DNA from: Pocillopora damicornis
Taxonomy: Eukaryota
Length of the DNA: 64,000 nt
Direction of reading: 5' to 3'
Assembly (NCBI RefSeq): GCF_003704095.1
Contig: NW_020843846.1
Coordinates: 62,001 to 126,000 of the forward strand
Made by a program: the position numbers and the translations under genes. This document shows, piece after piece, positions 193-62,705 of this stretch (position 1 is the first letter of the stretch; each line of letters opens with the position of its first letter). The notes beneath the pieces are model-generated. The model did not search any database, was not told where the DNA came from, and saw only the letters and a program-made list of their open reading frames with translations.

Positions 193-331
193 GTTTTCGA
201 TGGAAACACAGACGCTGACACTGTTGTATCACATGACCTAGTTCCACCAATAAGAGCTCGCTATGTCCGTTTTCTCCCAGGAGGTTGGCATATTCATATA
301 TCAATGAGAGTGGATTTATATGGATGCGAAG
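193..331 (+). CDS. exon 1: F5/8 type C (discoidin) C-terminal half
   Basis: VFDGNTDADTVVSHDLVPPIRARYVRFLP...SMRVDLYGC; ag/gt flanks. Confidence 0.9.
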
Positions 332-3300
332 GTATTTTACAAAGGTCTAAATTTCGGTGCTCCTTAAAGAGCACTGTACTTATATTCGTAGAAAAGTATT
401 CACACAAAGTTAAGATGGATGGCAATCATCATGGTACTTCGCTCGACTTCTCAAGAAACCTTCAACGATAGCTTAGTCGAACAAACCCATTAAAAGGTTT
501 TTTTGCGTCTAAGGGATCGGCGATCAATGTGAAATTTTTAAATTCAACCATTTCTGTGATCACGAAAATACTGTCAGCATAACTGCACTATTAAATTGTC
601 CATCCACAGAATGTCAAGAAGCTCTTGGAATGGAGAATGGCGTAATCCTCGATGAAAAAATTACTGCTTCTTCTCAGTATGCTGAGAGGACTGGCCCAGC
701 TCGGGCACGACTTTACTTTGAAAACACATTCGGGACAGGAGGTTGGGTGCCAACCCTTCTGGATGACAATCCATGGCTCCAGATTGACTTGGTCAGTCAA
801 TACCGAGTAACACGTGTCGCTACTCAAGGTTGCTATCATAATGTATTATCATTATGGGTAATAAAGTACAAGCTGATATACAGGAGCGAAGGAGAATACT
901 TTAAATACTACAAGGAAAAAGACCAAACTACTGAGAAGGTGAAAATCTTCATGGCTATCTTTTAAATGAATGATGAACCTTTCTCAAAATGATTGAACAA
1001 AATTGAAAAATACATCTTAGGGAAAATATAATCCTAGTTGGGGGGGGGGGGGGGGGGGGTAGGCGATCATAGTACTAACTGAAAATGTCAGCCATATATA
1101 AAACGTCTGCATATGTGCGAGCGTTTTTATGGCATGAAGGGTTTCAGAACAAAGTGGTCTCACTGGAGGCATAAACAATCACACAGGCCTATGACTCGAG
1201 CTGTTTGAAAATAACTTGAAGCTGTGATAAATTTCCTCAAGCAAAACAGAGGGGGCAGCACCAATCCGCGTTAAATCAGCGACAGAAACGCAGTAACCGT
1301 CAAAATTAAAGAAAGCTTGAATGGACGATACGATTAAGGCCTTAAGCTATTGCACTTCTTTTTTATTCAAGCTTTCGCCGATCTACGGTATATCGTCATG
1401 GCATGTATAGGAAATGTTACGCAATGCGTGATACTAAAGATAAATAGGTGATACGAATCGTATCACTCCTGTCAATCAAATTGCTACCGAAAGAAAATTC
1501 GAACAACGTTTGTTGAGAGAAACTAAAATCGGTTCTTTTTTTAAGCAACCAGCAGGAAAATTTTGGATAAAGCATTAAGCATGTGCTGGCCATGAATTCT
1601 TGTTATTGTGTCCACAATTTACATTTCTTTTAAGTGATGATTTCACTATTTTTTACTTTGATCATAAACAAAGGAATTTGATGCAAACACAGACAAGAAC
1701 ACTGTTGTCTTCCACGAGTTATACCCAGGAATCACCGCGCGTTACATACGTTTTTACCCAACACAATATAACACTCAGGTCTCAATGAGAGTGGAGCTCT
1801 ACGGATGTCCAGGTACTGTACAGAACGGTTTTTTTATATGAGGAACTTAGTTATACAGGCATTTTGATTGGTTATTACTTGTGATCCTTTGGAAGACAGA
1901 CGCAAAAATTACATTAACATTTAAATGGATTCCGTGTTGCCGTGCGCCTGTTCATCAATAAACCATAGAGGAGCTCAGATTAAGAACATCTACAATCTAT
2001 TACTGAACAGCCGGATGGCAAAATGCAATCTTGTTGTTTACTGTCATCCACTTCAGTTTCAGTTTTACAAAAACTCATGTTGCCGTCCGTCAGTTCTGCA
2101 ATAAATCACAGAAAACGTCAAAATATGGAAAGAACAAATTAGTGGTACACGAGGTACAGCCGCGTATTCATCATGACGCTTACTTTGATCGGCTACTAAA
2201 CAGACACACGGCGAGATACGTAATCATTTAAAGAATAAGGAAGCAACATTCTGTTATCGGTGACCTAATCTATGCGTTTGTCCTCTAATAGATTATAGAA
2301 ATAACCAATCAAAATGCGATTGTCACTTCGTATTATCTTACGATTAAATTTATTTGCTAAGCCACCGAGAAAAAGATCACTTGATTATTGGCCGAAAGAA
2401 ATGAATGGCTAAGCACTGATTAGGAATGAAGGCCTAGCCACTGTCTTTTAAGTTATTCTTTAAATCTCAGCCATCACTGTCAGTGGCACTTTATATTAGT
2501 AATCGGTAAAATAACTAGACAAAGTTGAAGTTAAAAACTTTGTGTCACACCTTTCAAGTCTGTCCAATACCCACTAACTGATACGATTGGAAATAACGTT
2601 TGCCGATACGTTCGAATCGACAAATCGTGAGGATCGATTAACGACCGGTAGTCGAATCGTATAATGCATATTATTGGTATGTCTTATGGTGACAGTTGTG
2701 GGTATAGGGTACCCTTTACGACTCGTACACGTCACACTTTACAGGAGTATTAGAAAACACTCACACCTATGGCACACTGACGAAGCGTCGTTCGGATGAT
2801 CTTACGTTATCTAAATGACAAAATTTTATGTATTAACTCGTTATCTGTTGAAGACCACGACGGTTATATGATTGCTTCATTATTTCAAGATTGTCAAGTG
2901 GTAGCGTATTACTCAATTAAAAGTCCCAGATATCCCAAAGATTATCCAGGAAATATGGATTGTGTCTACGAAATTCCCATTCTTCATTACAAGGCCCTGA
3001 CATTCACCTTTCAAGATTTTCACCTTGAGGAAAGTTCGTTTTGGTAAGTACAAACGCAGAGGTTGCGGTGAACTAGCATTTTTAAAGTTTTAACTCTAAT
3101 CCTTTTCTTCTGTAGTTCTACAGATTACCTGAAGATCTCTAACGAGAAAAACCAAACATTTGGCACGTTCTGCGGGCAAATCGCATCACAGGCTATCACT
3201 GTGACTGGGGAAAAAGCAATCGTTGCATTCCACTCGGATTACGCTCTTCAAAGAAAAGGATTTCGGATATACTTCACAGCAAGTTAGTTATTATTTAGCC

Positions 3301-6300
3301 TCATTTTCAAGTTTCTATTTTAAAATGTGTGGTCGCAGGAAGTGAAAACGTCAAAGTAGAATGTAAGGCCTAAACAATGGAGGTTTAACAAGGGATCTCA
3401 AACTGAAAATCTCGCCGCCAGGTGATCGCTTTCCCGTTTTTAATTACCTGAGTAGTTTCCTTGGTTTATTATCTTTCAGTCTGTGAGCCAGTCGTGAAAA
3501 ATACATTGAGAAGTCCTGGATATCCAAGTAACTACACAGGAAGACATGATTGTGTTTATAAAATTCCTATTCCAAGACGCAGTGCGATGAATATTTCCTT
3601 TATCGATTTTTCCTTGGAGTTTCATAATTCTTGCAGGTAACTGTAGTTTGTTGGGTTATCCATGAACAAGAAGCCTATATAGGAGTATGAGAAACAAGCT
3701 CGTGATTTTCACATCCAAGGAGTAATCCATCAATCCATCGAACCCTCCGCCCGTCCGCTCGCTCTTCCACACGTCTTTCCGTCAATTCATTCATCCATCC
3801 ATAGTTCTTTCTTTCTTTCATCCTTTCTTTCTTTCAGTCAGTCAGTTAATCAATAAATATAAATCAATCAATAATCAATCGATCCAACGACCGTTCAGTT
3901 AAATCAACGTTGCGAGAATCATTTCGCTTATCAGAATTCATCGGCATTTTCTTTAATCGCATCAATCAATATGAAGAATGGAAAGACGTAAACTCCCTCG
4001 TACAGAACTGCAAAATTTTCAAACACCTTTATCGAGGCTTAAACTCGGATCTTTTGGTCCACATTCCTGCCAGCTGATAATTGGGCCACAGATGTCGTTC
4101 TGAACTTAGAAAAGTGATAAGGAACTAGCAAAAGGAGTTCGGAGCAACAATGCACATCTGGGCTCAAAATCACCGTTAGGAATACATTGTAATGGTGTTA
4201 CAATATGATCGGGATCATGCTCAATTAGAGATAATTTAAAACGTCAGAAGCTCCTTGGGCCTGCATAAACGTTAATAAAGTCTTTCTTAGGGTAAAACCG
4301 TCTTCTTTACTTCTTTGTAGCTACGATTATCTAACGATTGCTAATGATACCAATCATGTTTTTGGAAAGTTCTGTGGCGAGAAGACTGGGAAAACGTTTA
4401 TTGTAACCGGTCGGTTTCTACTCATCACATTCCACACAGACTACGTTGTAGAAAGCAGAGGATTTGACATAAACTTCAACCCTGTACCTCTTGGTGAGTC
4501 TTTTCATCAGATAGGTCACCGAAAATCGTAAACTCACTTGTTTTCTCTATTGCTAATAAAAAATCTATTATTGAACGCAAAAATCATCGCCTCTTTATCT
4601 GGAGTTGGAGTTGCTTTGGAAATCACAAGTATACTCCCTTCGGGTAAGAAAATGTAGTGCAGGGCCTTTTAAAACATGAAGATTGCCGTCATTGCATGGC
4701 CAGAAATTAACACCCTTAAACTCACAACTAATATCCACATGATCTTTGATCCTCTATCAAGAACAACGCGTCAAGCGAGTCACAATTAATTAGACGTCGG
4801 ACTTCGCAACGAGCCACCTGTCGATATTTTTCATGATGCGTGAAACTTCCCTCATCTCGAACATAACCATTAAGACACAAAGAACACGAAAAGGAAAAAA
4901 AAAACACCATAAAAACAAGATCAGCTGAATATGGAGAAGATTACAATTGGTTGCAGACAAAGAATTTGATAAATTGATACTAAAATATTCCAAGATGCAT
5001 AACTGAGAGGTTGCCATTTTCGAGAGTAGTTCTACCATGTATTAGCACCCATTACGGCGCCTCAGTCATTCAGTACAGTGCACTGCTAAATAAAGGACTC
5101 CCTTTTACATAGTAAGACCTATATTTTTCATTCCTAAATTTGTTCGTCTTTAATTCGGTAGTTCATGGACGCGACTGCCTAGATCTGCTTCACAAAGGTT
5201 ACACTGACAGTGGCGTCTATGGCATTAATCCGGACAGAGGAAGATTCATAACAGTCTTCTGCGACCAGCAAACAAACGGAGGCGGCTGGACTGTCTTGCA
5301 GCAACGGTTGGATGGTTCTGTTGACTTTTATCGTAATTGGACTAGCTATAAAAATGGATTTGGAGACTTGACGTCAGAATTTTGGCTGGGAAATGACAAC
5401 ATCCACAAAATAACTTCACAAAGCTCACAGCTATTAATCGAGCTCAAAGACCAAGCCAATTTGACAGCACATGCGTCTTATAATTCTTTTCAAGTTGGTT
5501 TGGAAGCTGAGAAGTATGTTGTTAGAGTAACAGAGTTCTCTGGAACAGCAGGGGATTCCTTAGCTGTTCACAACGGAATGATGTTCAGCACGCCGGACTC
5601 AGATAATGATGTTCACGATCCTTATGCTTGTGCACAAAAATACACAGGGGCTTGGTGGTACAAAGAATGCCATCAATCAAATCTAAATGGTCGATATGGA
5701 AAAAATGAATATGCCGAGGGTGTTATCTGGTATCACTGGAAAGGATATTATCATTCACTCAAGGAATCCTCAATGAAAGTCAAACCTCGTCGAGGTAACA
5801 TCGAAAAACATTGCTTGTTTGGGGTTTATTTGTATATACAACCCCTAGGCCTAAGTTTAAAGACTTAAGAGGCTTTAGACAGCAACGAACACCTAAGGGC
5901 TCAAGAAACATTTCTAACCGGAGGAAATCTTTTCACCTGAATATTTTTTGTATTTCCCTCCCTTAGGCTTAAATGATTTAGAAAAAGTTCAGTATAAAAT
6001 CCATTGCGATATAAAAAAACTTAAAACATTAGGAATAATGCAAACCTATGCGATCGAACACCAGTGGTACATTATATTCAACAACTATTCACCAACGTGG
6101 AGGTGGCTAGTGGTGAATATTTAGTCATCTTCCTTTCGTCATTTACAGAACGTCAATGGTCGTACGAGCTGATCTTTAGCGGGGAGTCATCAGACTACGT
6201 GCTGCTCCCCTACATCACTGACCTTCAAGATGCTACAGCTTGTTGGTGGATGAAGACCGAAAAAACTCCAGGCTGGTCAACAGTTTTCTCGCTTCATAAC

Positions 6301-9300
6301 TATAAAAATGAAAGTCTCCTGAGCTTCTCCTTTCATGACAACGGCAGCTATTCTTTGCACGTGCATAGTGAACAGAAGTGAGTGGATAGGTCTGCTTTCA
6401 TGATTATTTCGCAAGGGATGTCAATTTTTTATCCTTTAGCGTACAGCACTGTCTAAAACTAATCATTGGTTCGCAGTGCAAACGATTATCTTCGAATATC
6501 GCTTTTCTCCTCTCTCAGATATATTAGTAAAATTAAATTGCATTATACTAAACCCGAGTTCAACCGCAACCTAACACAATAGCTTGGAATTGAATCGTTA
6601 CGCAGAACCCGCATAAATACTTACCATTCCATAAAATCATTATTTAATTTTAAACAAAATCTCAGATAAATTATTTTCACATGTTCAGTATCTTTAACGT
6701 GCAAGATGAAGTCCTTTCAGATGGTCTTTGGCATCACATGTGCATCGCAAGGTCCTACTCGGATGGCAAATGGACATTTTACTCTGACGGCGTAGAGAAA
6801 TTGGAAGGTGTAGATCTGGGGACTGACTATAGCACTGAAAAAGGGTTCATGATCATTGGGAAATTCCGAGGCAATATGAGCAGATTTAACATGTGGGACG
6901 AGTACATCGATGATGTTTCCCGGATTGAAAAAATAGCGCATGCATGCTCGTCTATAACCGGAAATGTCGTACCATGGTCAGAGGTTTATCTATGGCGTAG
7001 AGGAACTGTCCTCAAAGAGAATACTTCTGTTTGCAACTTCTTTGGTGAGAGTTATAAATTAAAGGAGAAAACAACTGACCATGTCTTACGAGCATATTGC
7101 TCAGGATACTGCTACATGTTAGCTCAGCAGTTTTTTCTTCCCTCCATCAGAGGAATGACTCCGTCTGGTCACCATTCCTTCCCTTCCTATTGACTGTCAA
7201 CTTCGTTGGTGGCAACATGATTTCTCGCACACTACGGTGTTAAAAAGAATAAGAAAATTTTTCAAAGACACCGAAATTGCAGTTTGTAGTCTTTAAAATT
7301 TTTACAAGTGCTTATTTGCAACAAATTGCTCGAGAAATCATGTTGTTTCTTGGTAATAATTTACATGAAATACGCATCACACTAAGTCAAGCCGGACGAA
7401 ACTTTGGCAGCGCGCGCTATTTAAAATTTTGACTCGTGTTACAACTTTGCATTCGTGTTGCAGGAAAAATGCAATCGTTTTCAGCCAATTAGACGCACGC
7501 TATTTTCCCATGTATATCATTAAAAAGTAAAAGCAACTTACAAGATATGTATGTCCACTATAAGACATTCACCTTCAAGGTTTGTGTCATTACAAATCGA
7601 AACTATGTTGCATCAAGGTAACTAAGTAATATCATCTGAGTAGAAAACGTAAATTGGCCGCCGTAAAGAGTTTAAATTCTGGCGGTTCTAGCATTACCCA
7701 TTCTTCAGGAGCGATGAAAGAAGGGCTAACGCTCGAAACGTCAGCTTTATTCCTTTTTACGGTGGCCAATTTACGTTATCAACTCAGTTGGTATATATGA
7801 TACTGAATTATCCTGTTATACCCTCCTTCATTCATTTACGGTACATCAAGCCAGGCATTTATGCCAATACGTTTCCTACTGATATAACCGTTATGTTTTC
7901 TGTTTTCTTCCTCAGAAGTCGCCCACTGGGATTTTAGAAGACGCAGCGCCTCTAATTCCAGAATGACATATGACCTTCTCTCCTCAACGTCAGGGGTCTT
8001 TAACAAACATGGCTTTAACAGAGTGAAAGGCATGGCGAGCTTACAAGTCTACGAGAACTTGGCCGTGAGCGTCGATGTTCAATCAGAATGCCTTGGTAAT
8101 CCGAGTCTTTGTCATCAAGGACTTTCCCTTGGCTTTTGGTTGCGTCACAAGCGTAAGTACGAGGTCTCTCGGTTGCTTGTTCTTTTAAATTTATAATTAA
8201 AATGGATGGGAAAGCGTCCTTGACAGATCAAGATTTTTTGTTACAACAGCCAAGAAGCAGAACCATGTTACTCATCCCTTTTTTTGCTTTTTGAGGTAAC
8301 AAAAGAGCTTTGCGGAAATTAATTCGGCTCCAGAGGGTAAAACAAGAATTCTAAACATATGAACTTTCTTAGTGTTTTGTTAACAATTTGCGGCAAAATC
8401 GTGCATTCTCAGTCATCCAGGGCCGGGTTGTTCAAAGCTGGGATAAGATAACCAGGGTTAGTCTGAAATCTGATTTCAGGACTAAAAGCTGTAAAAGGAA
8501 ATTCAGTCGAATTCTTTTAGTCTAGAGTATGAATATTTGACGCTTTAAATAGAACACTGAAAATTATCCCAAAAAGGCCTTTGAGTAAAGGAAGAAAGAA
8601 ACCCAGATTAAAATTTAACCCTGGGTTAGCGCTAATCGGCCTTCGAACAACTGGGCCCAGGGTTATTCAAACTGCGCACATACCTTGCTAGCAAAGGTGC
8701 AATGTTAACTGGTATACAGTCCTTGTCTTATGGCAAACACAGAGCGCAATCCTGAATTACATTCATGGAAGAAGTATGGATGTAGAAAATACGCTAGAAA
8801 GGAAGCTTTAAGTGTTGATGATAGTATCAAACAAAGAAAGAGCGATAGGAATTTTTCAAATAAAATTAGGGCCTCCTCAGCTGTATTTCCCCTTTTCCTT
8901 AACAAACATGCCTGCTTAATACTTCTTTCCACTTCTTAACCTGGGATGGACTGACCTTTCAATCAGGGGAAGTAGAACTACTCCAAGTCGCTTCATACTC
9001 CGAAAACGGGATGCGCTTTCGCGTTATGGGCCACGTATCTCGAGTGGGATATCCTGTTACTTTGCAATCTCCCTAGTGTTGTATAATGAGGATAAGTCAC
9101 GTGGAAATAACAGTGACATTTCAACATTGTAGCACGCTTCATTACAACAATTTCTGGGTATAAAGATGAGTACGATAACCTTCTTGGAAAATGGCTTGAC
9201 GCTATACTTCCGAAAGAGGGTGCGTGGCTGCGTTGTTTCAAAGCATCTCCCAATTGGAAAGGTACTCATTTCCACAGTTGCGACGGCTTAGGACCGACTG

Positions 9301-28649: not shown

Positions 28650-28686
<37 letters not shown>

Positions 28687-30347: not shown

Positions 30348-30402
<55 letters not shown>

Positions 30403-36400: not shown

Positions 36401-39400
36401 TAGATAAGATCGTTTCTCAATTACCATACGACATATCATCATAAATAACCGCTGAAACTTCAGGAAAACTGACAATCGATGTTTGCATTCGAGGAATTTC
36501 CACTGAATTAAATTCTCATAGGGGAGTGGTATTTGTCACACTTATACGAACAAATGTCAGAGAAGTAAGTCGAGTACAGATCACTTTTCGTCATTTCGTT
36601 GGTTTTTTTCTTTGCCTCAATGGTGCTGATTAGAACCATTTCTGGAATAAAATGTTTTAGGTTACATATTGAACTACAAGGAATGGAATACTATCTACCT
36701 GTGTGTTCATTGTAAGTGACGGTAATCATTCCTTTCTACGCTTTAAGTACCAGATCATCCGCCAACAAACGTGACCGCGTTCAATACCAGTTCCACGAGT
36801 ATTAACGTCACCTGGCAGCCCATCCCTCCAGATCATACGCATGGGATTATCCTGACGTATCAAGTTAAATACTGGAGACGTGATAAACCAAATGATAACG
36901 TTTCCAACGTCACAGTAAACAGTACAGAACTACAAGTGGAACTGAAAGGATTGGGAAAGTACAAAGAATATTCAATTCAAGTCGCTGGATCAACGGTGGT
37001 TGGTTTGGGGAATTACTCGGAAGTTGTTTTTGTGCGAACTGAACAAGACGGTATGTAACCCATTTCTCAGTAGGCAACAATTTGTTCATGTGCTTACTCA
37101 TCTTATTAGCTTTTTCTTGAATTGTGGTAATAAATTCCATTATCGAGGAAATAGCTTTTCAATATAAATTTTTCAGTAGACTTTAAGAAGGACAAGTACC
37201 ATAGTGCCATCCCAGAACTTAAACCATCGCTCAAACTCACTTTACGTATAACAATCTAAATTTTTCTCCAAACCAGTTTTTTCTTGTTACCGCAGTCCCA
37301 GATGAGCCGCCAGTCAACATCAGAGCAAAAGGAATAGAACCCACTTTATTAAAAGTCCATTGGTCTCCTGTGCCTTACGAAACCATTAATGGAATTGGCA
37401 TCGGTTACAAGCTCATCCTTATCCACATAAATGGAACCATTCTAAGAAATTTCACATTAAATACCTCAGCCCTCACGATAGACATCACCGGTTTAGAAAT
37501 ATGGACGAATTACACCATAAAGATGACAGCTTTCACTGTCATGGGAGATGGCCCTTGGAGTGATTTTATAAAAGAAGATACAGATGAAGAAGGTAAACCA
37601 GCAGCTCATCATTTAAATCAGGCTTAAATGCGTCACTTAAGCATACCCCCTAAAAATAGCCATATCTCGCTATTTAAGAAATTGAAATGCATGCTTACTA
37701 AGAATTTCCTAACCAAAGTTCTAAGGTATATTCAACAGCAGAGCGTTGGGCTTCATTCTCAATTACACGATATTTCCTAGTGGCGTTTGTGGGTAAAACC
37801 ACGCTTAAAGATACTGTTCAGTCGAGCGAGCAAAAGGAAATAATTCTTAAATCTTTTTTCATAGCTCCATTCAAACCTCCAGCTAATTTGACAGGAGAAG
37901 CAAAAAGTTCGACATCAATCTTTGTTCAGTGGAGTTCACTTGTTCTACCAAATCTCCGGGGTATTCTCCGAGGTTACACGGTTTATTACAAAGAAGCGCC
38001 AAGTTCTGTTCATCCAAGTGTGTTAAAAAACGTGTCAGTTGGCATATCTGTGACTGAAGTTGAGCTAACCGGCTTATACAAATTTACCAAGTATCAAATC
38101 TGGGCAACAGCCTTTACGACCACAGACGGGTTGCCGAGTAACTCTTTATTTGTAACAACACAAGAGGACAGTAAGTTTTTCTTCTTCAAACTGCCTTTTT
38201 TAAGCATGCATTGCTGACAAGTTTCTTCCTTCAAATTCAACTCAAGCACTAACTTGTCGTTGTCTCGTCATCAATAGCTCCGGACCGACCTCCTCTATAC
38301 ATCACATACTTGGCTCCAAGCTCCACCAGTCTCTTTGTTGAATGGGGTGCAATCCCTCCGCAGTTTGAAAATGGCATCATAAGGGGGTTCAAAATTCAAT
38401 TCCATGAGATTCCATTCAATGGCACAGTGGAAGAGAGGGAAGGCCAACCACTTCTCCGCTGGATGATTCTTGATAATTTAAAGAAATTTACTTTCTACTC
38501 TATTCAAGTTCGTGCCTTCACAACTGAGGGATATGGACCTGAAAACAAACTTAAAGCACGGACGGGTCAAGACGGTATGTTTCTTTCGTATGACGTTATT
38601 GATTGTAAAAACTGGGAATCATACAAGATTCTTGATGGCAGGTTATTTTCATATTATGTAAATTATATGGGCTGACTGGGATTTTATACTCAAAATAATT
38701 ATAGCAATTTTGTTTTTCCTTTTGGTCTTTTACTGACAACCGTTAAAAATGCTGCTTTCCAGTCCCCAGTAAACCTCCACAGAGTATAACTACTGAAAGT
38801 CACGTAACATTGACAACAATTCCAGTTGCCTGGAAACCAATCGTTCCAGATCATATCAATGGCATATTGCTTGGTTACAAGATTAGGTACCAGGCCGTTG
38901 AGATTGGCGAGGAGTCAGTTGAAGACAAACCTATCAGGGAGCAGATAGTGAATTCCTCTACTTTGTCTCTGGTGCTGACAAATCTTGAGATTTTTATCTT
39001 GTACCGGATTGATGTTGTGGGATTTACGATCATGGGCGACGGCCCGCCGGCCACGGATTATGCAGGTTTGTCACGTTCTCGACGGAATGGTGATAATATG
39101 TGATAATATCTCTTATTTTAAAAATTACAATTATTTACAGAAACCTGTCGCTGTCATAAGCGGCTCACAACAAGTTGGTACGAATTTCAACCATATGTCC
39201 GATTGTCCGAAAACGGTCTCCCAGACGGACTTATTCCACCTATCCTTAGCGATCTAGCAGTCACGTGCTGCGAAACCTGTCAATCACATGGTAAATCTTA
39301 CGTGGACATGAATTTAAATGGGTTCAATGTGTCAGCAATGTTCCCGAGTCTACGTGCACTACGGAACGGTATAGAAAATCCCACAGACTTTTTCTTTCCG

Positions 39401-42400
39401 GTGTACGGCTTTAAAGACCAGACACATTTTGCCAAACAGTTTGGTTACCAAGGAATAGTTGAATCACCTGGAATGGCGTTCATAGTTAACACAAACTCCC
39501 AGGATAATATGCCCAATGCTGTCCTGGTAAACATAGCGTCCTGTTGGCCAGCGGTGATGTTGGCTTTGGTAATCACGTACTTGGCAGGGCTGGTCGTATG
39601 GTTTGTGGTAAGTCGATCATTCGGTTTCACTGCATAACGACTGAGGATTGCACAATATTGAGAGCTACCAAGACAGTCTGTGAGGTTAATTCCTGGTCAA
39701 AGATCATGATATTTGTCGTCAAAAGATCCGAAGTGCGTCGCAAAATTGGCATTAGCAAGTTATAGCTTGTTCCAATGCAATTTCAATAAGGTACCCAACG
39801 ACAGAACACAAAACCATTGATGATTTGGGTAACTCTTGGTTTCTGAATTTGCACAGTGCAAAGCTTTAATCAGTGTTCCACTGTCTCCATACGTCGCATT
39901 TCTTTCGCCTCGATTAGCTGCACATTTTGGCGGGAATGGACTACTATATATGTCTTTCAATTGCTAAGGAATAAAAATTTGTTGTTGCCTTTTATTGTCA
40001 TTGTTGTTGACAGACTTGATCAACAACGAATAGTTAGAAAGGGAAATACAGAATCACTTTGATTTAACTCATTTTCCTTCCTTTCATGTGTGCAGGAGTC
40101 GGAGACCAATCCCCAAGACTTTCCACCATCGTTTATAGAGGGAGCGTATGAGTCGTTTTACTGGTCATTTGTATCCATGACAACTGTTGGGTGAGTGTCA
40201 ATCAAGTAATCTTTAGACTAAAATCGAGACTTGAGTCAATCCTTAAGGTCAATATCGATCTAGAAATTGAATGAAGTCTCCTTCTAGGTCGTAAGTGGTG
40301 GTGGACCCTTACTCCGTGAGTGTCTCAAGTCATATACTCACTGTAAAGTTTGGGATAGGACATGATCTAAAGGCCTACAAAATTATACCTTCTCTGAAAC
40401 GAGTTTGTAAATCGACATTCACAGATACGGCGATCGAGCACCAATAACCATCATAGGAAGAATCCTGGCTATAGTTGTCATTTTGTCCGGTTTAATAATC
40501 TTTGGAATTGTGAATGGCGCCATGGCAACGGCCATTACAAGTGTTACAATGGAAACAGATTACAAGATCTACGGAACTAAGGTAAAATAGAGATGGAGAA
40601 AACGAGTTTGATTTCGAAATGGCCACGCAGTTGCTCTTTTTACAGTTTCTCGTTTGGGTAACTGGTCTAACTTTCGAAAAACTAGGTCTATGCTGTTGGT
40701 ATCTGTCTGAGATGGAACACACAGAGATGTGCTTATTTTCTTATTTTCTCAGCAAATCAAAAAAACATCGCGCTGTATCATAACTAGGTAATTTCAATTC
40801 AATACCAACCTGATTATTCCATGTAAGAGTAAAGAGAAGTGTACATTGTTCCAACTGCTCCTGGCCTTGTACGATATTACGCTAGTAAGTTAATCCATGC
40901 TTAATATTGCGTCAACTGAGAGCCTTCCCATCCACTGCCTGTTTGGAAAAACGATTTTGCTCAGTAAACTCATTATTACGTCCCTGCCACGAAAGCGCTA
41001 TTTTTTATCCTACTGAGCGGAAAAAGTATATGAGATGGGGAAAATGGAAAATCATAAGAGCAGATCACGTGGTGCAAAGGTAGCGTTTGGGTCCTCGCAA
41101 ATGGAGAGACATGACTCTTCTACTAATGTAAGAGTTTATCCCACAGACTTGTCCCATACTATCATCAGTTATTAAAACATGGGAAAAAAATAGTGTCGTT
41201 TTAAAAATTAAACCAATTGATGTTAGGGCGATCAACTTCTCCCAAAGATTCCAATGATCAGCACCACCGGGAGGGTGTGCATGAGTTTAAGCTGTATTCG
41301 CCCCTTGTTTTTGTCCATGTAGAAGAAATTAGTTTAAATTTCTAAACGCTCATCTGTAAACAGTGACAGTTAGGAACTTCTAAGTATAAAATGTTACAAG
41401 GCTTCCATATTACATTTTACTTTCGCAGGTAGCAGCAATTGAGGGTTCTCCTGAATATCGAATGGGAGTAAGGAAAAATGCTAACATGGACAAAGGTAAC
41501 ACTACCTAAAACAATCGACGATATTTACCGTTGGAAGAAGCAATGGGTGGTAGAATTGGTAGAGCTATCAGCAGCAGTTTATAAAAAGCCTAAAAAGCAC
41601 CGCAAAGAGTATCATTGACAAAGANNNNNNNNNNNNNNNNNNNNNNNNNNNNNNNNNNNNNNNNNNNNNNNNNNNNNNNNNNNNNNNNNNNNNNNNNNNN
41701 NNNNNNNNNNNNNNNNNNNNNNNNNNNNNNNNNNNNNNNNNNNNNNNNNNNNNNNNNNNNNNNNNNNNNNNNNNNNNNNNNNNNNNNNNNNNNNNNNNNN
41801 NNNNNNNNNNNNNNNNNNNNNNNNNNNNNNNNNNNNNNNNNNNNNNNNNNNNNNNNNNNNNNNNNNNNNNNNNNNNNNNNNNNNNNNNNNNNNNNNNNNN
41901 NNNNNNNNNNNNNNNNNNNNNNNNNNNNNNNNNNNNNNNNNNNNNNNNNNNNNNNNNNNNNNNNNNNNNNNNNNNNNNNNNNNNNNNNNNNNNNNNNNNN
42001 NNNNNNNNNNNNNNNNNNNNNNNNNNNNNNNNNNNNNNNNNNNNNNNNNNNNNNNNNNNNNNNNNNNNNNNNNNNNNNNNNNNNNNNNNNNNNNNNNNNN
42101 NNNNNNNNNNNNNNNNNNNNNNNNNNNNNNNNNNNNNNNNNNNNNNNNNNNNNNNNNNNNNNNNNNNATCAGAGCAAGCTCTTATTTTTTCACTCGAAGG
42201 GTGGCCGATGTAGTTTCTGAGCTTGCTTTACTGCGATGACCGGAGATCGCCATGATGAGCGAGCCGCGATGGACTTCAGCATGATCATATTCGCTCTGAC
42301 ACCGTTGTGATTAGTATGAATGTTAACAGTTGTGCCAGTTTGGTTATATTTTTCATCATTTCTNNNNNNNNNNNNNNNNNNNNNNNNNNNNNNNNNNNNN

Positions 42401-44644
42401 NNNNNNNNNNNNNNNNNNNNNNNNNNNNNNNNNNNNNNNNNNNNNNNNNNNNNNNNNNNNNNNACTAAGATTCCATTAAAGAGAATGCTATTCAGTGAAA
42501 TATGAGGTTTATGAGAATCTAGCGCGAGGAATGAAACTATACGACGTATGCACTAGAAATCAATGCATTCAGTTCTCCGCATGAGCAAAGGGGCAAAGTT
42601 TAAAGAAGTGCTGGGCTTTTTTCTCCAGAACGCGAATACCACACGTTCGACGATATCTACGAAGCCCTACATGAACGACACGTTATTGGGGCCTTAATAG
42701 ATACATACAGTGCTGGAAACAACAAGGATTTGTTTGAACAAGAACATCTACGAGTGAATAAGATCCTCGATTACTCGGCTACCTATGGGGTTGTAATGGG
42801 AGTGGAAGCCCGAAAACTCAGACGCTGTTTCAAACGGTACACTGAAAGGGTATTCGCTAGTAAGATTTCACATCATATTCAAAAGAATACAGAACAGCTC
42901 AAGGCGAGTATCAAATAAAAACATTGATATTTGGTAGAATTATATTGTTGTAGAGCAATTTTTTGGATGTCATTTATATCAAAAATTTATTGAATGACTG
43001 ACAGACTAAAAGATTGACTGACTGGCCAACAAACTGAGACCAACTGACCAACCGACAGGCTTGTTAACTGACAGACTGATTGATTGACTGACTGACTGAT
43101 TGACTGACTGACGCCAACTGACCGACTGACTGACTGACTAACCGAAAACCAGAGAGACCAACTGACCAACTAAACCAAACTAATCTGTTATGCCCCCAAC
43201 GACGCAGCACCACAGTTTCTTTAGAGACTTAACCCCTGTATAACTGACTGACGGATTGGTTACGACCGACTGACTGATTGACTGACTGACTGACCGTTTG
43301 AGACAACTGACCAACTGACTGACTGATCGAAAACATGAGAGAACAGTTGACCAACTAAACCAAACTATCTCGTTATACCCCCAACGACGCAGCACAACTA
43401 TTTTCTTAGAGACGTAACCCCTGTAAAACTGACTGACTGATTGGCTGACGACTGACTGACTGGCTGACAAATAGTGGTTTGATTTTTCTCTTTTAGGAGC
43501 CCGCTGAACCGCTCTCCATGGAAAGATCAACCGGGATATTTGACAGTCACAGCACGGTGTTTCAAAAGACTATGTACATAACTATAATATGGTTAACATC
43601 GTTCCTGTTTTGTGGCATTATCTGGGAAATTATTCAACGCTGCAGAACAAGAGCAAAGGTTACATCACATGGTAATTACATGCACCTTCGGATCTTTTGA
43701 ATACTTTAAATTGTTTTTTTAATGCCTAGATATTAACCTTTTTGCTTTACGCCTTTGATAATTTGCTACCCGTTTCCAGCGCCAATAACCATCCTCGGCT
43801 ATCCCGGTTACTCTATCTCTGTCTATCTTTAGCTTTCAGGTAAACTGTGACATCATTCTTATTCTATTTAGATACACAATGTCTCTGACGTTACTGATCC
43901 TTGCAATATGCAGGACGCTTCTCATGTACTAAGCTAATAGTGCCCTACCACACCCAAGAGTCCTCTGTCTCTCAGCGGTGCAGCAGTGGGCCGGGAGATC
44001 CTGAGGACTAAGGGAGTAAGACTCAAATTGTTTTCTATGTGCCTTGCCCATGGAAAAACACAAAACAACTTTACTTTACACTTTCATGTAACTTTACTTT
44101 ACTTTACAACTTTGCTGTAAAATTTGGAAGTTTCACATACTTAGAAATGCCTCGGATATTTTAAAGTGTTCTGTATTTCTTCCTATCCATCTCATTTCTC
44201 CCTGATTTATCTCATCTTATCAAAATTGTTCGAAAATGTAATAGAGGGAAGATTTTCGCGTTGGCTACCATTTTCTGTACGTGTTCTCCCTATTTTGTTT
44301 TAGATTCACGACAAGAGCTAAGGACCGAGTTGAAAGGAATGGTCGAAAGTTTTAATGAAAACATTCGAACAATTAAAAAAGAACTGGCATCACGACATAG
44401 AAGAGAAAGAAAAGAACTCCTGACAAGTATAGAGAAGCAGCGAGGCAGGAAATATCTTTCGTCAGTTGAAGTTTCAGAGCTGGACAACCCTTACTTTGAA
44501 CCAGAACCGGACGAACAGGTATCACCCAAGGATAAATTTGATGAGTTGGTGTTTTCCAACGATACACCAGACAAAGCGGAACATTGCTGCGATGAACGTA
44601 ACGAGGAGCATTTGCCAAGCAATAAATATCAAACCAATTGCTGA
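193..44644 (+). CDS. Giant multidomain receptor-like protein with C-terminal iGluR/GluR0-like channel carrying a K+ filter (54 exons in window, 5' end upstream of window)
   Basis: Manual splicing gives 54 exons with AG acceptors and GT donors (one GC). Phases are compatible, the total of 13,875 nt is divisible by 3, and it ends at TGA 44642-44644. Domain motifs are recognisable throughout; the exons are listed individually below. Confidence 0.8.
610..938 (+). CDS. exon 2: F5/8 type C N-terminal half
   Basis: CQEALGMENG...ITASS...ARL...WLQIDL...VATQG...WVIKYKL. Confidence 0.92.
1674..1812 (+). CDS. exon 3: F5/8 type C C-terminal half
   Basis: EFDANTDKNTVVFHELYPGITARYIRFYP...SMRVELYGC. Confidence 0.9.
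2890..3043 (+). CDS. exon 4: CUB domain 1 N-half
   Basis: IKSPRYPKDYPGNMDCVYEI...TFQDFHLE; phase-2 donor gtaagt. Confidence 0.9.
3116..3282 (+). CDS. exon 5: CUB domain 1 C-half
   Basis: CSTDYLKI...GTFCG...VAFHSDYALQRKGFRIYF. Confidence 0.9.
3480..3636 (+). CDS. exon 6: CUB domain 2 N-half
   Basis: LRSPGYPSNYTGRHDCVYKI...ISFIDFSLEFHNSC. Confidence 0.9.
4321..4493 (+). CDS. exon 7: CUB domain 2 C-half
   Basis: YDYLTI...GKFCG...ITFHTDYVVESRGFDINF. Confidence 0.9.
5162..5794 (+). CDS. exon 8: fibrinogen C-terminal (FReD) domain
   Basis: [37 protein letters not shown]...EFWLGND...GAWWYKECHQSNLNG. Confidence 0.95.
6149..6377 (+). CDS. exon 9: pentraxin-like domain N-half
   Basis: LIFSGESSDYVLL...DLQDATACWWMKT...TVFS. 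Confidence 0.85.
6689..7044 (+). CDS. exon 10: pentraxin-like domain C-half
   Basis: DGLWHHMCIA...GKWTFYSDG...FRGNMSRFNMWD...C...GNVVPW. Confidence 0.88.
7649..7830. repeat. Palindromic dispersed repeat (same family)
   Basis: gtaaattggccgccgtaaa...tttacggtggccaatttac inverted arms; gaagggctaacgctcgaaacgtcagc. Confidence 0.7.
7916..8152 (+). CDS. exon 11: LamG/ConA-like domain N-half (continues in exon 20)
   Basis: VAHWDF...SECLGNPSLCHQGLSLGFWLR; cag acceptor, gtaagt donor. Confidence 0.8.
8421..8657. mobile_element. MITE with terminal inverted repeats and 3-bp CAG target duplication (PIF/Harbinger-like)
   Basis: Left end ggccgggttgttcaaag, right end cttcgaacaactgggcc; internal inverted accagggtta/taaccctggg; cag on both flanks. 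Confidence 0.7.
9133..9360 (+). CDS. exon 12: TLDc domain 1 N-half
   Basis: WLRCFKASPNWKGTHFHSCDGLGPTVTFIRVQKNIFGGF. Confidence 0.85.
9781..10101 (+). CDS. exon 13: TLDc domain 1 C-half
   Basis: AFIFSLKN...FGPIFGENDI...LLAGSKYFIVDDLEAFY. Confidence 0.88.
10734..11038 (+). CDS. exon 14: F5/8 type C N-half
   Basis: QLSASSS...SWCS...EWLELDLG...GVAVQG. Confidence 0.88.
11145..11259 (+). CDS. exon 15: F5/8 type C C-half
   Basis: NYFYPNSYTARYVRFTVIHAKTASCMRVGV. Confidence 0.8.
11686..12054 (+). CDS. exon 16: C-type lectin domain 1
   Basis: CLPNWKYFRGSCY...SWEAAKTTC...LVNI...ENDFI...WIGL...EPA...C...WYTVSC...FICE. Confidence 0.92.
12765..13042 (+). CDS. exon 17: F5/8 type C N-half
   Basis: ARL...SWC...WLQIDLG...GINTQG...FVKKFTLAY. 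Confidence 0.88.
13532..13673 (+). CDS. exon 18: F5/8 type C C-half
   Basis: EFVGNVNGNGVVKQTFLPPFKAHFVRF...CMRVEIY. Confidence 0.88.
14085..14444 (+). CDS. exon 19: C-type lectin domain 2
   Basis: CPSGWEYFQGSCY...C...LPKVTSIEENNFL...WSDGS..FTNW...CV...WNTVLC...IACK. Confidence 0.92.
14589..14780. mobile_element. TTAA-flanked non-autonomous element (piggyBac-like MITE), copy 1
   Basis: TTAA-CCCT...AGGG-TTAA; internal ctccttac/gtaaggag inverted pair; homologous copy at 59638-59849. Confidence 0.65.
15170..15574 (+). CDS. exon 20: LamG/ConA-like domain C-half
   Basis: WVHVGITWSNQWGLRFYQNG...FYIG...ISDLRIWE; tandem acceptor gagcag (15167 is an alternative start). Confidence 0.85.
15957..16150. 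repeat. Palindromic dispersed repeat (same family)
   Basis: ttggccaccgcaaagagtttcaaag...gctcgaaacgtcagctttgaaactc...ggccaa...ccgacgcagcaccacagtttcttta. Confidence 0.7.
17156..17272 (+). CDS. exon 21: probable MAM domain N-terminal segment
   Basis: WYMWKNTGNYDYPWEL...PQDT; polypyrimidine-tag acceptor, gtaagt donor, 117 nt, phase 1-1. Confidence 0.65.
17942..18232 (+). CDS. exon 22: WSC-like domain
   Basis: YHNMGCFK...KCLHAARRKGNKMFAVASGGKC...C.NGKGATNYMNIY. Confidence 0.78.
19011..19424 (+). CDS. exon 23: F-type lectin (FTP/fucolectin-like) domain
   Basis: NAAFKKPTAQS...ATDG...CTKT...PWWRVDL...IRVG...C...GRFVSI...LKLCEVEV. Confidence 0.9.
20062..20318 (+). CDS. exon 24: MAM domain core
   Basis: GYVQAS...CLSFHYSMSG...LNI...W...GDQGNQWKFAQV. 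Confidence 0.88.
20927..21047 (+). CDS. exon 25: MAM domain C-terminus
   Basis: IKFEALSDGGIGGKIGIRNIKA...C.C.P..AC. Confidence 0.8.
21530..21760 (+). CDS. exon 26: TLDc domain 2 N-half
   Basis: WVPCYRAHVNGWQKLVFHQMCDNRGPSVTIARIDSFVFGGFSDKSW. Confidence 0.9.
22174..22485 (+). CDS. exon 27: TLDc domain 2 C-half
   Basis: SSNAFLFSL...GPCWG...YFTGQTSFQADDLQVF. Confidence 0.88.
23123..23233 (+). CDS. exon 28: short EGF-like Cys module
   Basis: CDPPCWEGESCDEIAGKCICDPTRREEEMC (6 Cys); phase 1-1. Confidence 0.75.
23416..23537. repeat. 61-bp tandem duplication
   Basis: taacgtaagatttgcttttatc...ctctgacacctacttg.attatgcaatggaaa twice. Confidence 0.9.
23897..24130 (+). CDS. exon 29: unassigned 4-Cys module
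   Basis: Open 234-nt phase 1-1 exon: NCKERW...CSGRLFARYD...WRCYYEDAL...SNCYH. Confidence 0.7.
24800..25119 (+). CDS. exon 30: F5/8 type C N-half
   Basis: CRPLGMESGSILDSQITGSS...NARL...AW...QWLQIDF...VATQGR...WVKSY. Confidence 0.93.
25510..25631. mobile_element. Hairpin (foldback) MITE
   Basis: Near-perfect arms of about 50 bp: ggatcaatatcagtatctg...cctacccctcccctaac / gttaggggaggggtagg...cagatactgatattgatcc. Partial relatives near 60360-60425, 61912-61955 and 63945-63985. Confidence 0.75.
25903..26041 (+). CDS. exon 31: F5/8 type C C-half
   Basis: IFNANWDENTVVYNTINPVIFARYIRVMPKTWKSHISMRVEFYDC. Confidence 0.92.
26773..27468 (+). CDS. exon 32: intact LamG/ConA-like domain
   Basis: YVWTFD...GVRGRA...VTVALWL...WTHWVFTW...VYRNG...FTIG...FDDIIVW. 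Confidence 0.88.
27790..27908 (+). CDS. exon 33: SEA-like domain N-part
   Basis: VNVSLELTDEEFNLEYRNITSEIFKHTSTWIESQ; gtaagg donor, phase 0. Confidence 0.78.
28421..28476 (+). CDS. exon 34: SEA-like domain middle
   Basis: Strong acceptor tttctcgcag; VMSLHQNNSLLSVDNFVF(W); phase 0-2 bridges exons 33 and 35. Confidence 0.7.
28660..28802 (-). mobile_element. Dispersed repeat fragment with minimal hammerhead-like core (Penelope-like-element-associated type)
   Basis: Minus strand reads CTGACGA-A-GGGC-TAAC-GCTC-GAAA-CGTC-AG; same family as 7649-7830, 15957-16150, 28085-28150 and 32166-32310. Confidence 0.55.
29700..29848 (+). CDS. exon 35: SEA-like domain C-part
   Basis: NVTNVAANFTIRFKG...LGNRPI; gtaagt donor. 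Confidence 0.75.
30349..30420. repeat. (AAT)n microsatellite
   Basis: Directly visible. Confidence 0.95.
30571..30861 (+). CDS. exon 36: FN3 repeat 1
   Basis: SSTSLAVSW...NLKPYTLYAITV...G.G..S...RT.E. Confidence 0.92.
31186..31450. repeat. Diverged local direct duplication (about 75-bp unit)
   Basis: gaaatcc.actccac...aaaga.accaaatt.ggagaatcttct...atgat.tggg at about 31186 and about 31370. Confidence 0.7.
31468..31767 (+). CDS. exon 37: FN3 repeat 2
   Basis: PTSPPLNV...VSWEP...GIILGYKI...AFNSVGEGPPS. Confidence 0.93.
32166..32310. repeat. Palindromic dispersed repeat (same family, degenerate)
   Basis: gtaaattggtcaccgtaaagag...ctttgcggtggccatttta. Confidence 0.65.
32321..32428 (-). repeat. 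Probable SINE-like repeat fragment
   Basis: Resembles, from memory only, the 3' part of an abundant coral repeat (ttttcaggcc...ctgcgaggatcac...ccgcagttcaaatatatgac); single copy in this window. Confidence 0.35.
32540..32824 (+). CDS. exon 38: FN3 repeat 3
   Basis: PSLAPP...TSVTVKW...NGII.G...GLEK..Y.IKVASFT. Confidence 0.92.
33416..33753 (+). CDS. exon 39: F5/8 type C N-half (within the FN3 array)
   Basis: CNAIGMED..ITESQITASS...NARL...GAWCA...WLQIDF...VAIQG. Confidence 0.92.
34317..34458 (+). CDS. exon 40: F5/8 type C C-half
   Basis: IFQGNWDSNTVVFNSITPVIYTRYIRILPKSWEGNPCIRAEFFTC. Confidence 0.9.
35023..35319 (+). CDS. exon 41: FN3 repeat 4
   Basis: SSTGVGLQWKPP...LKPYTPYEFKV...KTQED. Confidence 0.9.
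35866..36201 (+). CDS. exon 42: FN3 repeat 5, with furin-type site RRRKR|S
   Basis: PSEPPRNF...INGVLRGYKV...NRRRKRS...NLESYSTYTVTVLAFT. Confidence 0.9.
36748..37050 (+). CDS. exon 43: FN3 repeat 6
   Basis: PDHPPTNVTAFNTSSTSINVTW...GLGKYKEYSIQV. Confidence 0.93.
37296..37592 (+). CDS. exon 44: FN3 repeat 7
   Basis: PDEPPVNI...LKVHW...GLEIWTNYTIKMTAFTVMGDGPWS. Confidence 0.93.
37865..38170 (+). CDS. exon 45: FN3 repeat 8
   Basis: PFKPPANL...SSTSIFVQW...GLYKFTKYQI. Confidence 0.93.
38278..38574 (+). CDS. exon 46: FN3 repeat 9
   Basis: PDRPP...SSTSLFVEW...NLKKFTFYSIQVRAFT. Confidence 0.93.
38763..39065 (+). CDS. exon 47: FN3 repeat 10
   Basis: PSKPPQSI...IPVAW...INGILLGYKIRY...GFTIMGDGP. Confidence 0.92.
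39141..39607 (+). CDS. exon 48: periplasmic-binding-protein-like S1 lobe plus first transmembrane helix (M1)
   Basis: WYEFQPYV...DGLIPPILSDLA...DFFFPV...SPGMAFIV, then hydrophobic WPAVMLALVITYLAGLVVWFV; gtaagt donor. Confidence 0.85.
40096..40190 (+). CDS. exon 49: pore helix and first half of K+ selectivity filter
   Basis: ESETNPQDFPPSFIEGAYESFYWSFVSMTTVG; phase-2 donor gtgagt. Confidence 0.92.
40425..40581 (+). CDS. exon 50: YGD filter end plus inner transmembrane helix
   Basis: (G)YGDRAPITIIGRILAIVVILSGLIIFGIVNGAMATAITSV...KIYGTK. Confidence 0.92.
41429..41495 (+). CDS. exon 51: start of S2 lobe
   Basis: VAAIEGSPEYRMGVRKNANMDK; tttcgcag acceptor, gtaaca donor. Confidence 0.85.
41625..42167. 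other. Assembly gap (N run)
   Basis: Ns. Confidence 1.
42364..42463. other. Assembly gap (100 N)
   Basis: Ns. Confidence 1.
42629..42903 (+). CDS. exon 52: S2 lobe (GC donor)
   Basis: YHTFDDIYEALHERHVIGALIDTYSA...YGVVM...LRRCF...; ends AAG|GCGAGT. Confidence 0.82.
42993..43468. repeat. (GACT)n-rich tandem array with a duplicated unit of about 185 bp
   Basis: gactgact runs; cccccaacgacgcagcac...tagagac.taacccctgta twice. Confidence 0.9.
43497..43671 (+). CDS. exon 53: final (M4-like) transmembrane helix
   Basis: STGIFD...MYITIIWLTSFLFCGIIWEII followed by basic QRCRTRAK. Confidence 0.82.
44304..44644 (+). CDS. exon 54: cytoplasmic tail (coiled-coil-like then acidic), terminal exon
   Basis: ELRTELKGMVESFNENIRTIKKELASRHRRERKELL...DNPYFEPE...NC*. 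Confidence 0.82.
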
Positions 44645-62700: not shown

Positions 62701-62705
62701 CTTGG
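50694..62705 (+). CDS. KCNH8: Elk-type (Kv12; KCNH3/4/8-like) voltage-gated K+ channel, 5' part; gene continues beyond the window
   Basis: Five phase-compatible exons: 50694-50769, 50974-51207, 60124-60255, 61142-61290, 62316-62705. They show the PAS cap [21 protein letters not shown] motif [14 protein letters not shown], Elk-type [31 protein letters not shown] and helices S1-S3. The symbol means nearest vertebrate-like member; a co-ortholog of KCNH3/4/8 is expected. Confidence 0.9.
50974..51207 (+). CDS. Elk/KCNH exon 2 (PAS domain)
   Basis: SNFVLGGAQ...[22 protein letters not shown]...FLYG...FYKKN. Confidence 0.93.
55285..55812. repeat. Diverged direct repeat (two copies of about 170 bp)
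   Basis: gaagccgaagtaa.gggattttcatg...aagtgaa.attttccaatt...gaaagaccc...ttcttctgattca at about 55285 and about 55650. Confidence 0.8.
59638..59849. mobile_element. TTAA-flanked non-autonomous element, copy 2
   Basis: Shares ctccttactgtctg...tcaactaataatcc...acttgtc...gtaaggagaaatt...aagggttaa with 14589-14780. Confidence 0.6.
60124..60255 (+). CDS. Elk/KCNH exon 3 (PAC)
   Basis: [32 protein letters not shown]. Confidence 0.92.
61142..61290 (+). CDS. Elk/KCNH exon 4 (N-linker)
   Basis: [14 protein letters not shown] resembles the Elk RRSRAVLYHLS-type linker; good splice sites. Confidence 0.82.
62003..62250. repeat. 17-bp minisatellite (actatgctatgcatcat)n
   Basis: About 13-14 units directly upstream of the Elk exon 5 acceptor. 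Confidence 0.95.
62316..62705 (+). CDS. Elk/KCNH exon 5 (S1-S3)
   Basis: LPQYK...[26 protein letters not shown]...FRTSFV...[21 protein letters not shown]. Confidence 0.95.

Follow-up and report, generated by a model that had tools for sequence, protein, structure and literature searches.

The window, by which we mean the whole stretch of DNA that was analysed, covers 64 kb of the genome of the coral Pocillopora damicornis (contig NW_020843846.1, C481 in the coordinates below, positions 62001-126000; 38.8% G+C). Its + strand carries a gene of at least 54 exons spread over more than 47 kb, the 5' end of which lies upstream of the window. We consider it probable that this is a single very large gene, the product of which combines a giant mosaic ectodomain with a channel that has a K+ filter and the topology of the ionotropic glutamate receptors (iGluRs). 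An earlier interpretation made from the letters of the window alone, referred to here as the sequence-only reading, had proposed such a fusion, and the evidence bearing on it is presented below.

The + strand was split into open pieces running from stop to stop, each piece was scanned singly against Pfam, and homology searches were run exon by exon; the assembly searched comprised 234,350,878 bases in 4,393 contigs. Eight exons matched F5/8C, the discoidin domain (193-468, 513-962, 1668-1838, 10691-11302, 12740-13051, 24775-25149, 25900-26052 and 33388-33858), and four matched CUB halves (2781-3044, 3072-3284, 3452-3637 and 4235-4528). A fibrinogen C-terminal domain was found at 5116-5865 (E 1.7e-74), Pentaxin/Laminin_G_3 at 6025-7190, 15109-15579 and 26688-27503 (pentraxin/LamG being counted at four places), TLD at 9117-9476 and 21478-21804, Lectin_C at 11628-12185 and 14039-14470, MAM at 20028-20342 and, weakly, SEA at 27780-27926. 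Ten fn3 exons follow between 30480 and 39100. Most of the module list of the sequence-only reading was thus recovered, namely discoidin, CUB, fibrinogen-C, pentraxin, LamG, TLDc, C-type lectin, MAM, a weak SEA and all ten fibronectin type III (FN3) domains. The WSC-like module proposed at 17704-18243 had no match, the EGF-like one was marginal (E 0.037), and the supposed F-type lectin scored as F5_F8_type_C_2. Together the exon cores encode about 4,490 residues inside the window, about 3,970 of them N-terminal to S1, the first lobe of the channel's clamshell. At least five discoidin half-exons (about 420 residues, C481:58777-61902) lie upstream of the window, and the gene therefore starts outside it; roughly 4,300 residues or more of the protein would be extracellular.

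The modules can be linked in one reading frame, as had been claimed. A script found frame-keeping GT..AG pairs at nearly every junction between consecutive conserved cores; by its assignments the introns at domain boundaries are almost all in phase 1, and the splits within discoidin domains are in phase 0. Its top or tied-top pair was the joint verified by RNA in seven of nine cases, and its best pair differed from the RNA joint at 38573>38762. No stop codon occurs in any of the exon cores. A 19-residue hydropathy scan of the cores detected transmembrane (TM)-like stretches only at M1, M2 and M3, in agreement with the earlier claim that neither a TM segment nor a stop precedes M1. One further TM-like stretch, near 33.8 kb, was rejected as read-through into the intron past the true donor of a discoidin half-exon.

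Direct evidence for splicing of the FN3 stalk to the channel comes from assembled RNA reads. Logan contigs from four RNA runs of four studies (coral and marine metatranscriptomes, mostly poly(A)) were placed on positions 35700-41600 of the window. The GT..AG joints 37049>37295, 37590>37863, 38170>38278, 38573>38762, 39606>40095 and 40579>41427 were seen in all four runs, and 36200>36747 and 40189>40424 in three; a loose contig end before 35865 coincides with the end of the FN3-4 exon. The joint 39062>39138, also present in every run and flanked on its shorter side by 142-255 letters, skips 75 nt. Given its 3-nt ambiguity it corresponds to 39065|39141, which is exactly the short intron that the sequence-only reading had placed between FN3-10 and S1. 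Individual contigs span FN3-8, FN3-9, FN3-10 and the S1-M1 exon and continue into the pore exon, and taken together the contigs lead from FN3-5 by way of the pore, M2 and linker exons into S2, the second clamshell lobe. At the last of these steps, contigs in all four runs pass 41495 by 147-255 letters, the first 30 of which are unique to 42629. GT follows 41495, a pyrimidine tract and AG precede 42629, and the joint, in phase 1, leaves the reading frame intact. Since RNA joins 41495 to 42629, both runs of N in the window (41625-42167 and 42364-42463) lie inside one intron, 41496-42628, for which neither the paralogue described below nor the Nematostella protein shows an extra conserved exon.

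Some less abundant forms were seen in the same material. In one run, at depth 2 and with a short side, an in-frame internal joint removes 126 nt from the S1 exon (39289-39416). Contigs running unspliced beyond the donors 39606 and 40579 (39612-39922 and 40555-40940) represent minor intron-retention forms. In all four runs a further contig matches only 40162-40192, 31 nt of the pore-helix exon. Its flanks are unlike those of the window and still encode ...WEGFW and ...GDRAPRSVL, with no intron at TTVG|YGD; this contig is the transcript of another family member.

The channel part has the order S1, M1, a re-entrant pore helix, M2 and S2, followed by a third TM helix (M3) and a tail. Hydropathy peaks at 2.50 and 2.67 in the M1/M2 region and at 2.07 in the M3 exon. 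The K+ filter, TTVGYGD, is intact: it is interrupted by an intron at TTVG|YGD (40191-40424) and joined in RNA. The pore would be selective for K+, since this filter is both intact and conserved in 15 of 16 relatives. Behind the S2 exon we placed by hand, from frame and homology, what is probably a GC-AG intron (42904-43496, donor AAG|GCGAGT), which returns in frame at 43497; the joint 43671>44304 between the M3 exon and the last exon was also placed by hand. A SYTANLAAF-like gate motif was not found in M2. An ANF_receptor/LIVBP-type N-terminal domain was not found by Pfam in any exon scanned or in the Nematostella relatives, and FN3-10 is spliced straight to S1, at the position where iGluRs carry that domain. 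The proposal of an iGluR/K+ core with an adhesion ectodomain in the place of the LIVBP-type domain is thus borne out by the fusion in RNA and by its conservation in Nematostella. Judged by motif position, and without structural alignment, no conserved Arg precedes D-F-x-F-P-x-Y-G in the consensus of the family, and S1 is rich in Cys (ETCRC, CCxxC). Since no conserved Arg is apparent at the position that contacts the alpha-carboxylate and S1 is Cys-rich, a classical amino-acid ligand for the clamshell appears unlikely.

That one gene encodes both the distal lectin array (193-27,270) and the channel is supported indirectly, by comparison with other sequences. An NCBI protein, 'protein sidekick-2-like, partial [Pocillopora damicornis]' (P0187), maps to exons of the window with 82-100% identity and joins 27270-27500 (LamG) to 27783-27911, 28394-28477, 29701-29892 (SEA-like), 30570-30860 (FN3-1) and 31467-31694 (FN3-2). 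A paralogue lies head-to-head with the gene on the minus strand of the same contig (C481:18.8-52.6 kb) and corresponds to it exon for exon, in the same order, between the fibrinogen exon and the tail, with an identity of 45-60% over the distal ectodomain and of 70-85% between FN3-4 and S2; S1 through S2 is the part best conserved between the two (77-80%). In the paralogue the N-terminal discoidin/CUB block is missing, as is most of the discoidin/C-type lectin insert. A 13-kb contig of another coral, L008, is collinear with exons 5116-14470 and, since it holds the discoidin/C-type lectin block missing from the paralogue, is on sequence grounds an orthologue.

In Nematostella vectensis, XP_048579794.1 (4,084 aa, 'uncharacterized protein LOC5501224') contains pentraxin/LamG, fibrinogen-C, TLDc, discoidin, MAM and SEA modules, nine FN3 domains and Ion_trans_2 at 3744-3825, and is collinear with the window from 5173 to 43691. 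Its 43.9-kb gene is interrupted by an intron directly in front of ETCRC and shares with the coral gene the intron at TTVG|YGD and the short linker exon. The protein begins with an N-terminal signal peptide, which is followed by about 3,700 residues without a TM-like stretch and then by three TM segments with T(V/L)GYGD. Two of four other Nematostella giants (P0042 and P0075) have the same pattern; P0141 differs only in that its hydrophobic signal peptide counts as a fourth stretch, and in P0018 the signal peptide is joined by no more than two C-terminal stretches that pass the cut-off as TM-like. By these comparisons the whole architecture, as reported here, appears conserved in the paralogue, in another coral and in Nematostella. 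A homologue search with the whole Nematostella protein returned only itself, and a metagenome contig that looked poor in introns (L013) was rejected as cDNA, being genomic DNA of another species.

The channel module belongs to a large family of sea anemones and corals. In a set of 1.84 billion representatives its S1-M1 exon matches 400 proteins (E<=1e-3), and this coral genome contains at least 34 matches to the S1/M1 exon; a search with the channel part of P0019 gave five matches. The named members come from Nematostella, Actinostola, Stylophora, Montipora, Desmophyllum and the octocoral Paramuricea. The region before S1 ranges from a signal peptide alone (Paramuricea, 461 aa) through one FN3 or CUB plus immunoglobulin (Ig) to as many as 3,600 residues. 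In the 16 relatives scanned, the third TM helix was present in 13 (19-residue mean hydropathy 1.7) and only two TM-like segments in the other three. In the ESM Atlas, Cnidaria dominate the clusters closest to the minimal member, one of which is an fn3 plus Ion_trans_2 cluster of 181 members, and the nearest non-cnidarian cluster by structure is bacterial, with Ion_trans_2, SBP_bac_3 and Lig_chan. The automatic names of members (sidekick-1, PTPRQ, contactin-3-like, RPTP-S-like, Kv subfamily F member 1) are misleading, since the family ends in a K+ channel module. Full-text literature searches found no published description of the family or of the Nematostella accessions. By full-text term checks, the main phylogeny paper on metazoan iGluRs does not mention K+, GluR0 or fibronectin, and three iGluR papers contain no description of the family. 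The gene models have been public already, but as 'uncharacterized' or under wrong names; what is new here is an iGluR/GluR0-superfamily channel with a new kind of ectodomain and a K+ filter in an animal.

The likely fold of the module was examined on a minimal family member, P0150, modelled with AlphaFold2 from a 38-sequence family alignment (mean pLDDT, the predicted local distance difference test, 77.8). Its best Foldseek matches are iGluR chains with ligand-binding and transmembrane domains, over about 455 columns (GluA2, E 3e-11; GluN1/N2B); the TM-scores are low (0.34) because domain orientation differs. In a search independent of Foldseek the model matched AtGLR3.4 (Z 15.3), GluR0 cores (Z 14.7-14.9) and the AvGluR1 core (Z 13.9), with about 215 residues spanning 28-384 aligned to the ligand-binding cores of GluR0, GLR3.4, GluD2 and AvGluR1 (Z 13.9-15.3); many amino-acid-binding periplasmic proteins also match. 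On the model of this relative, the module is a split class II clamshell on a K+-type pore with an extra, eukaryotic TM helix. Sequence matches in the PDB were limited to the pore (KvAP, E 9e-9) and to FN3 parts (RPTP delta/F, contactins, ROS1 and titin), and a PDB profile search with family alignment A2 was swamped by FN3 matches and uninformative on the clamshell.

Table 1. Exons, domains and introns of the gene, in window coordinates. Identities are to the proteins or contigs named.
Feature	Position	Strand	Evidence
C-terminal half of discoidin (F5/8C); N-half upstream at C481:61585-61902	193-331	+	Pfam
Discoidin, two exons (~610-938, 1674-1812)	610-1812	+	Pfam, splice pairs
Two CUB domains, each of two exons (2781-3044 with 3072-3284; 3452-3637 with 4235-4528)	2781-4528	+	Pfam
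Fibrinogen C-terminal globular domain, single exon	5158-5794	+	Pfam E 1.7e-74; 68% identity to paralogue
Pentraxin/LamG-type, two exons	6149-7044	+	Pfam; kept in paralogue and coral contig L008
Conserved coding exon without Pfam match	7916-8152	+	42-49% identity to paralogue and L008
TLDc, two exons	9133-10125	+	Pfam weak; tblastn to Nematostella TLD region 899-1082
Block of discoidin, C-type lectin-like, discoidin, C-type lectin-like	10734-14444	+	Pfam; mostly missing in paralogue, present in L008
LamG/pentraxin-type exon	15167-15574	+	Pfam
Conserved exon without Pfam match (earlier 'WSC-like', unconfirmed)	17942-18232	+	49% identity to paralogue
Galactose-binding-like domain (F5_F8_type_C_2)	19083-19424	+	Pfam
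MAM exon	20062-20342	+	Pfam E 6.5e-13
Second TLDc, two exons	21493-22485	+	Pfam; tblastn
Two Cys-rich exons; EGF-like marginal, weak MAR_sialic_bdg	23123-24130	+	53-76% identity to paralogue
Discoidin, two exons	24800-26041	+	Pfam
Laminin_G_3, largest exon	26746-27500	+	Pfam; proteins P0173 and P0187
SEA-like region, three exons	27783-27908, 28394-28477, 29700-29902	+	Weak Pfam SEA; joined in P0187
FN3-1, FN3-2, FN3-3, one exon each	30571-32824	+	Pfam; P0187 joins FN3-1 to FN3-2
Discoidin inserted within FN3 stalk, two exons, first ends near 33753	33416-34458	+	Pfam
FN3-4 to FN3-10, one exon each, phase 1-1	35023-39065	+	Pfam; RNA joints in 3-4 runs
FN3-4 to FN3-7 exons	35023-35319, 35866-36201, 36748-37050, 37296-37592	+	
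FN3-8 to FN3-10 exons	37865-38170, 38278-38574, 38763-39065	+	
Phase-1 intron, 75 nt, between FN3-10 and S1	39066-39140	+	RNA joint, 4 runs/4 studies; same place in Nematostella
S1 clamshell lobe (begins ETCRC) and strongly hydrophobic M1	39141-39607	+	RNA, homology, hydropathy; no Pfam match
Pore-helix exon, ends SMTTVG	40096-40190	+	RNA joints, homology
Exon beginning YGDRAP, with M2	40425-40581	+	Ion_trans_2 (40411-40587) E 4e-6; RNA
Short linker exon after M2	41429-41495	+	RNA joints; 80% identity to paralogue
Intron holding both assembly gaps	41496-42628	+	RNA continuation from 41495 to 42629
S2 lobe exon, GC donor at end	42629-42903	+	Homology to Nematostella and paralogue
Third TM helix exon (M3, counterpart of iGluR M4)	43497-43671	+	Homology, hydropathy
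Last coding exon: charged, coiled-coil-like cytoplasmic tail and stop codon	44304-44644	+	Homology to paralogue

Downstream of the tail, two exons on the + strand (50862-51242 and 62280-62759) match PAS_9 (E 2.8e-12) and the start of Ion_trans (E 1.2e-10); the gene is probably a KCNH (EAG/ERG/ELK-like) voltage-gated K+ channel that runs off the window. Spliced antisense RNA was detected on the minus strand, at about 40188-40217, at 40810-40938 and from 60805 onward. Antisense contigs over 40829-40940, from three runs, continue with letters unique to 60807; the flanks are consistent with a GT..AG intron of about 19.9 kb on the minus strand, and a further joint, 40217>40810 (CT..AC), is present in one run. 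This RNA opposes the pore/M2 region of the channel gene and crosses the neighbouring gene. A short repeated intronic element, probably a transposon fragment, occurs at 7707-7817 and 16010-16174 and again near 35.7 kb and 57.4 kb of C481; it is present in several introns of each paralogue, where its translation yields the same peptide-like string.

Several observations weigh against a single gene for a channel with a sensory ectodomain. A scan for the signal-peptide first exon, the location of which the sequence-only reading had called for, gave nothing convincing in C481:52.6-58.8 kb, and an assembly gap lies directly upstream of the first recognised discoidin exon. Direct RNA joints are confined to 35.0-42.6 kb, with 193-27,270 and 31.7-35.0 kb outside RNA coverage, and assembled contigs prove joints in RNA libraries rather than one full-length molecule and would be compatible with internal promoters. 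Neither the S1 nor the S2 exon has a Pfam match, including to Lig_chan (PF00060), for which the relatives score 20.5-29.2 bits, below the cut-off of 30.8, and the fold was assessed on a relative with about 24% identity, not on the window's own protein. The EPN/QPD and WND sugar and Ca2+ motifs are absent from both C-type lectin-like domains, which weakens the wording 'lectin', and glycan sensing should therefore not rest on these domains. Finally, literature searches found no report of conductance, selectivity, ligand or oligomeric state for any family member.

The limited reach of the RNA joints would suit an arrangement of two or more transcription units, in which the distal array (193 to about 27 kb) would encode a secreted or matrix protein of its own, an internal promoter would drive a channel that has only the SEA/FN3 stalk, and the full fusion would be rare or absent. 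The join across 27.3-31.7 kb is model-based, the NCBI annotation in this coral consists of partial pieces only, and family members with short ectodomains (461-786 aa) do exist. Nevertheless, the exon cores from 193 to 39065 contain no stop, TM or signal-peptide-like stretch, so that a short form would need an unseen first exon, and phase 1 runs throughout the domain-boundary introns. Moreover, the order from fibrinogen to channel is shared by the paralogue, by the other coral's contig and by two independent Nematostella models (4,084 and 4,612 aa), and the Nematostella giants have a single N-terminal signal peptide and no TM segment before the channel. We therefore regard separate units as quite unlikely. 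A mis-join at gaps, an annotation error or a decaying pseudogene is extremely improbable: the channel part of this draft-quality contig does contain two N gaps, but RNA contigs from four studies span every channel exon as well as the gap intron, the exon cores are open throughout, and the same structure recurs in the paralogue and in Nematostella.

A different question is whether, in a single gene, the ectodomain has any control over ion flux. The channel module might instead serve an adhesion or matrix protein as a tetramerising anchor or a constitutive K+ leak, with binding by the ectodomain leaving the flux unchanged. The apparent absence of a conserved Arg at the amino-acid-binding position of the clamshell, the M2 without a SYTANLAAF-type gate, the C-type lectin domains without sugar-binding motifs and the lack of any published function in our searches would all be compatible with such a role. 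On the other hand, T(V/L)GYGD and the clamshell are kept in 15 of 16 members checked and at about 30 paralogous loci, which speaks for selection acting directly on pore and clamshell, and S1-S2 is what the two paralogues have best preserved (77-80%). An anchor or leak thus seems rather doubtful to us.

Returning to the single gene with a functional channel, we suggest that its subunits would form tetramers conducting K+. The clamshell should gate the pore, as its iGluR/GluR0 fold implies, and opening could be driven either through the clamshell by a ligand other than an amino acid or by forces and contacts passed down from the adhesion ectodomain. Since the ectodomain occupies the position of the N-terminal layer in iGluRs, allosteric or mechanical control from above is plausible, and extracellular binding would then hyperpolarise or clamp the cell. 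Glycans, microbes, symbionts, matrix or tension, as the sequence-only reading had it, may thus gate ion flux. It is tempting to speculate further, and we do so tentatively, that anthozoans possess a class of 'adhesion-gated' or 'pattern-gated' K+ channels, in which recognition modules have been exchanged by exon shuffling and contact or pull is turned into K+ flux. In such a class, interchangeable lectin-type, matrix-type, Ig, CUB and FN3 modules would sit on top of a GluR0-like clamshell-pore, and contact with matrix, microbe, symbiont or another cell, or pull on the FN3 stalk, would be read as K+ flux with no second messengers.

The findings indicate that an animal lineage keeps dozens of iGluR-topology channels with intact K+ filters and has fused them to recognition and adhesion ectodomains of up to about 4,000 residues, and that database mis-naming (sidekick, contactin, PTPRQ, Kv-F1) hides this family from channel surveys. 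If these channels conduct, they would represent a new principle by which recognition or force outside the cell is coupled to membrane potential. They would also form a natural series, with anything from no extra domains to about 40, in which to study how an N-terminal layer controls an iGluR-type gate, and would provide candidates for coral-specific sensing of matrix, microbes or symbionts.

Among known systems, a likeness to polycystin-1 had been proposed, and it holds in concept, as both place a very long lectin/adhesion mosaic on a polytopic membrane protein tied to ion flux. It does not extend to the domains: Pfam detected no GPS/GAIN, PLAT, REJ or PKD-channel domain in any exon or in the Nematostella protein P0013, there are three TM segments only and not the 11-TM PKD-type part, and the coral polypeptide carries its ectodomain and a complete iGluR-type P-loop subunit in one chain. 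The tandem FN3 stalk is shared with FN3-rich receptors such as sidekick, contactin, PTPRQ and the LAR-type RPTPs, but these end in a single TM segment with a phosphatase or kinase, or in a glycosylphosphatidylinositol anchor, while the coral family ends in a K+ channel module. With the eukaryotic iGluRs (AMPA, kainate, NMDA and delta receptors, plant GLRs and AvGluR1) the protein shares the S1-M1-P-M2-S2-M(4) topology; unlike them, it carries FN3 and lectin modules in place of the LIVBP-type domain, has no SYTANLAAF, and has an intact K+ filter where they have a Q/R/N-site cation pore. Bacteria are known to possess K+-selective channels with iGluR topology (GluR0), and one rotifer receptor has the K+-filter signature; GluR0-type channels are the textbook 'missing links' between K+ channels and glutamate receptors. 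The coral module shares with GluR0 and with K+ channels gated by solute-binding proteins a clamshell of the class II periplasmic-binding-protein type, interrupted by an M1-P-M2 pore whose filter is of the TVGYGD type. It departs from GluR0 in its third TM helix and cytoplasmic tail after S2, its Cys-rich S1, the apparent lack of a conserved ligand Arg and its giant modular ectodomain, all encoded by an animal gene with introns.

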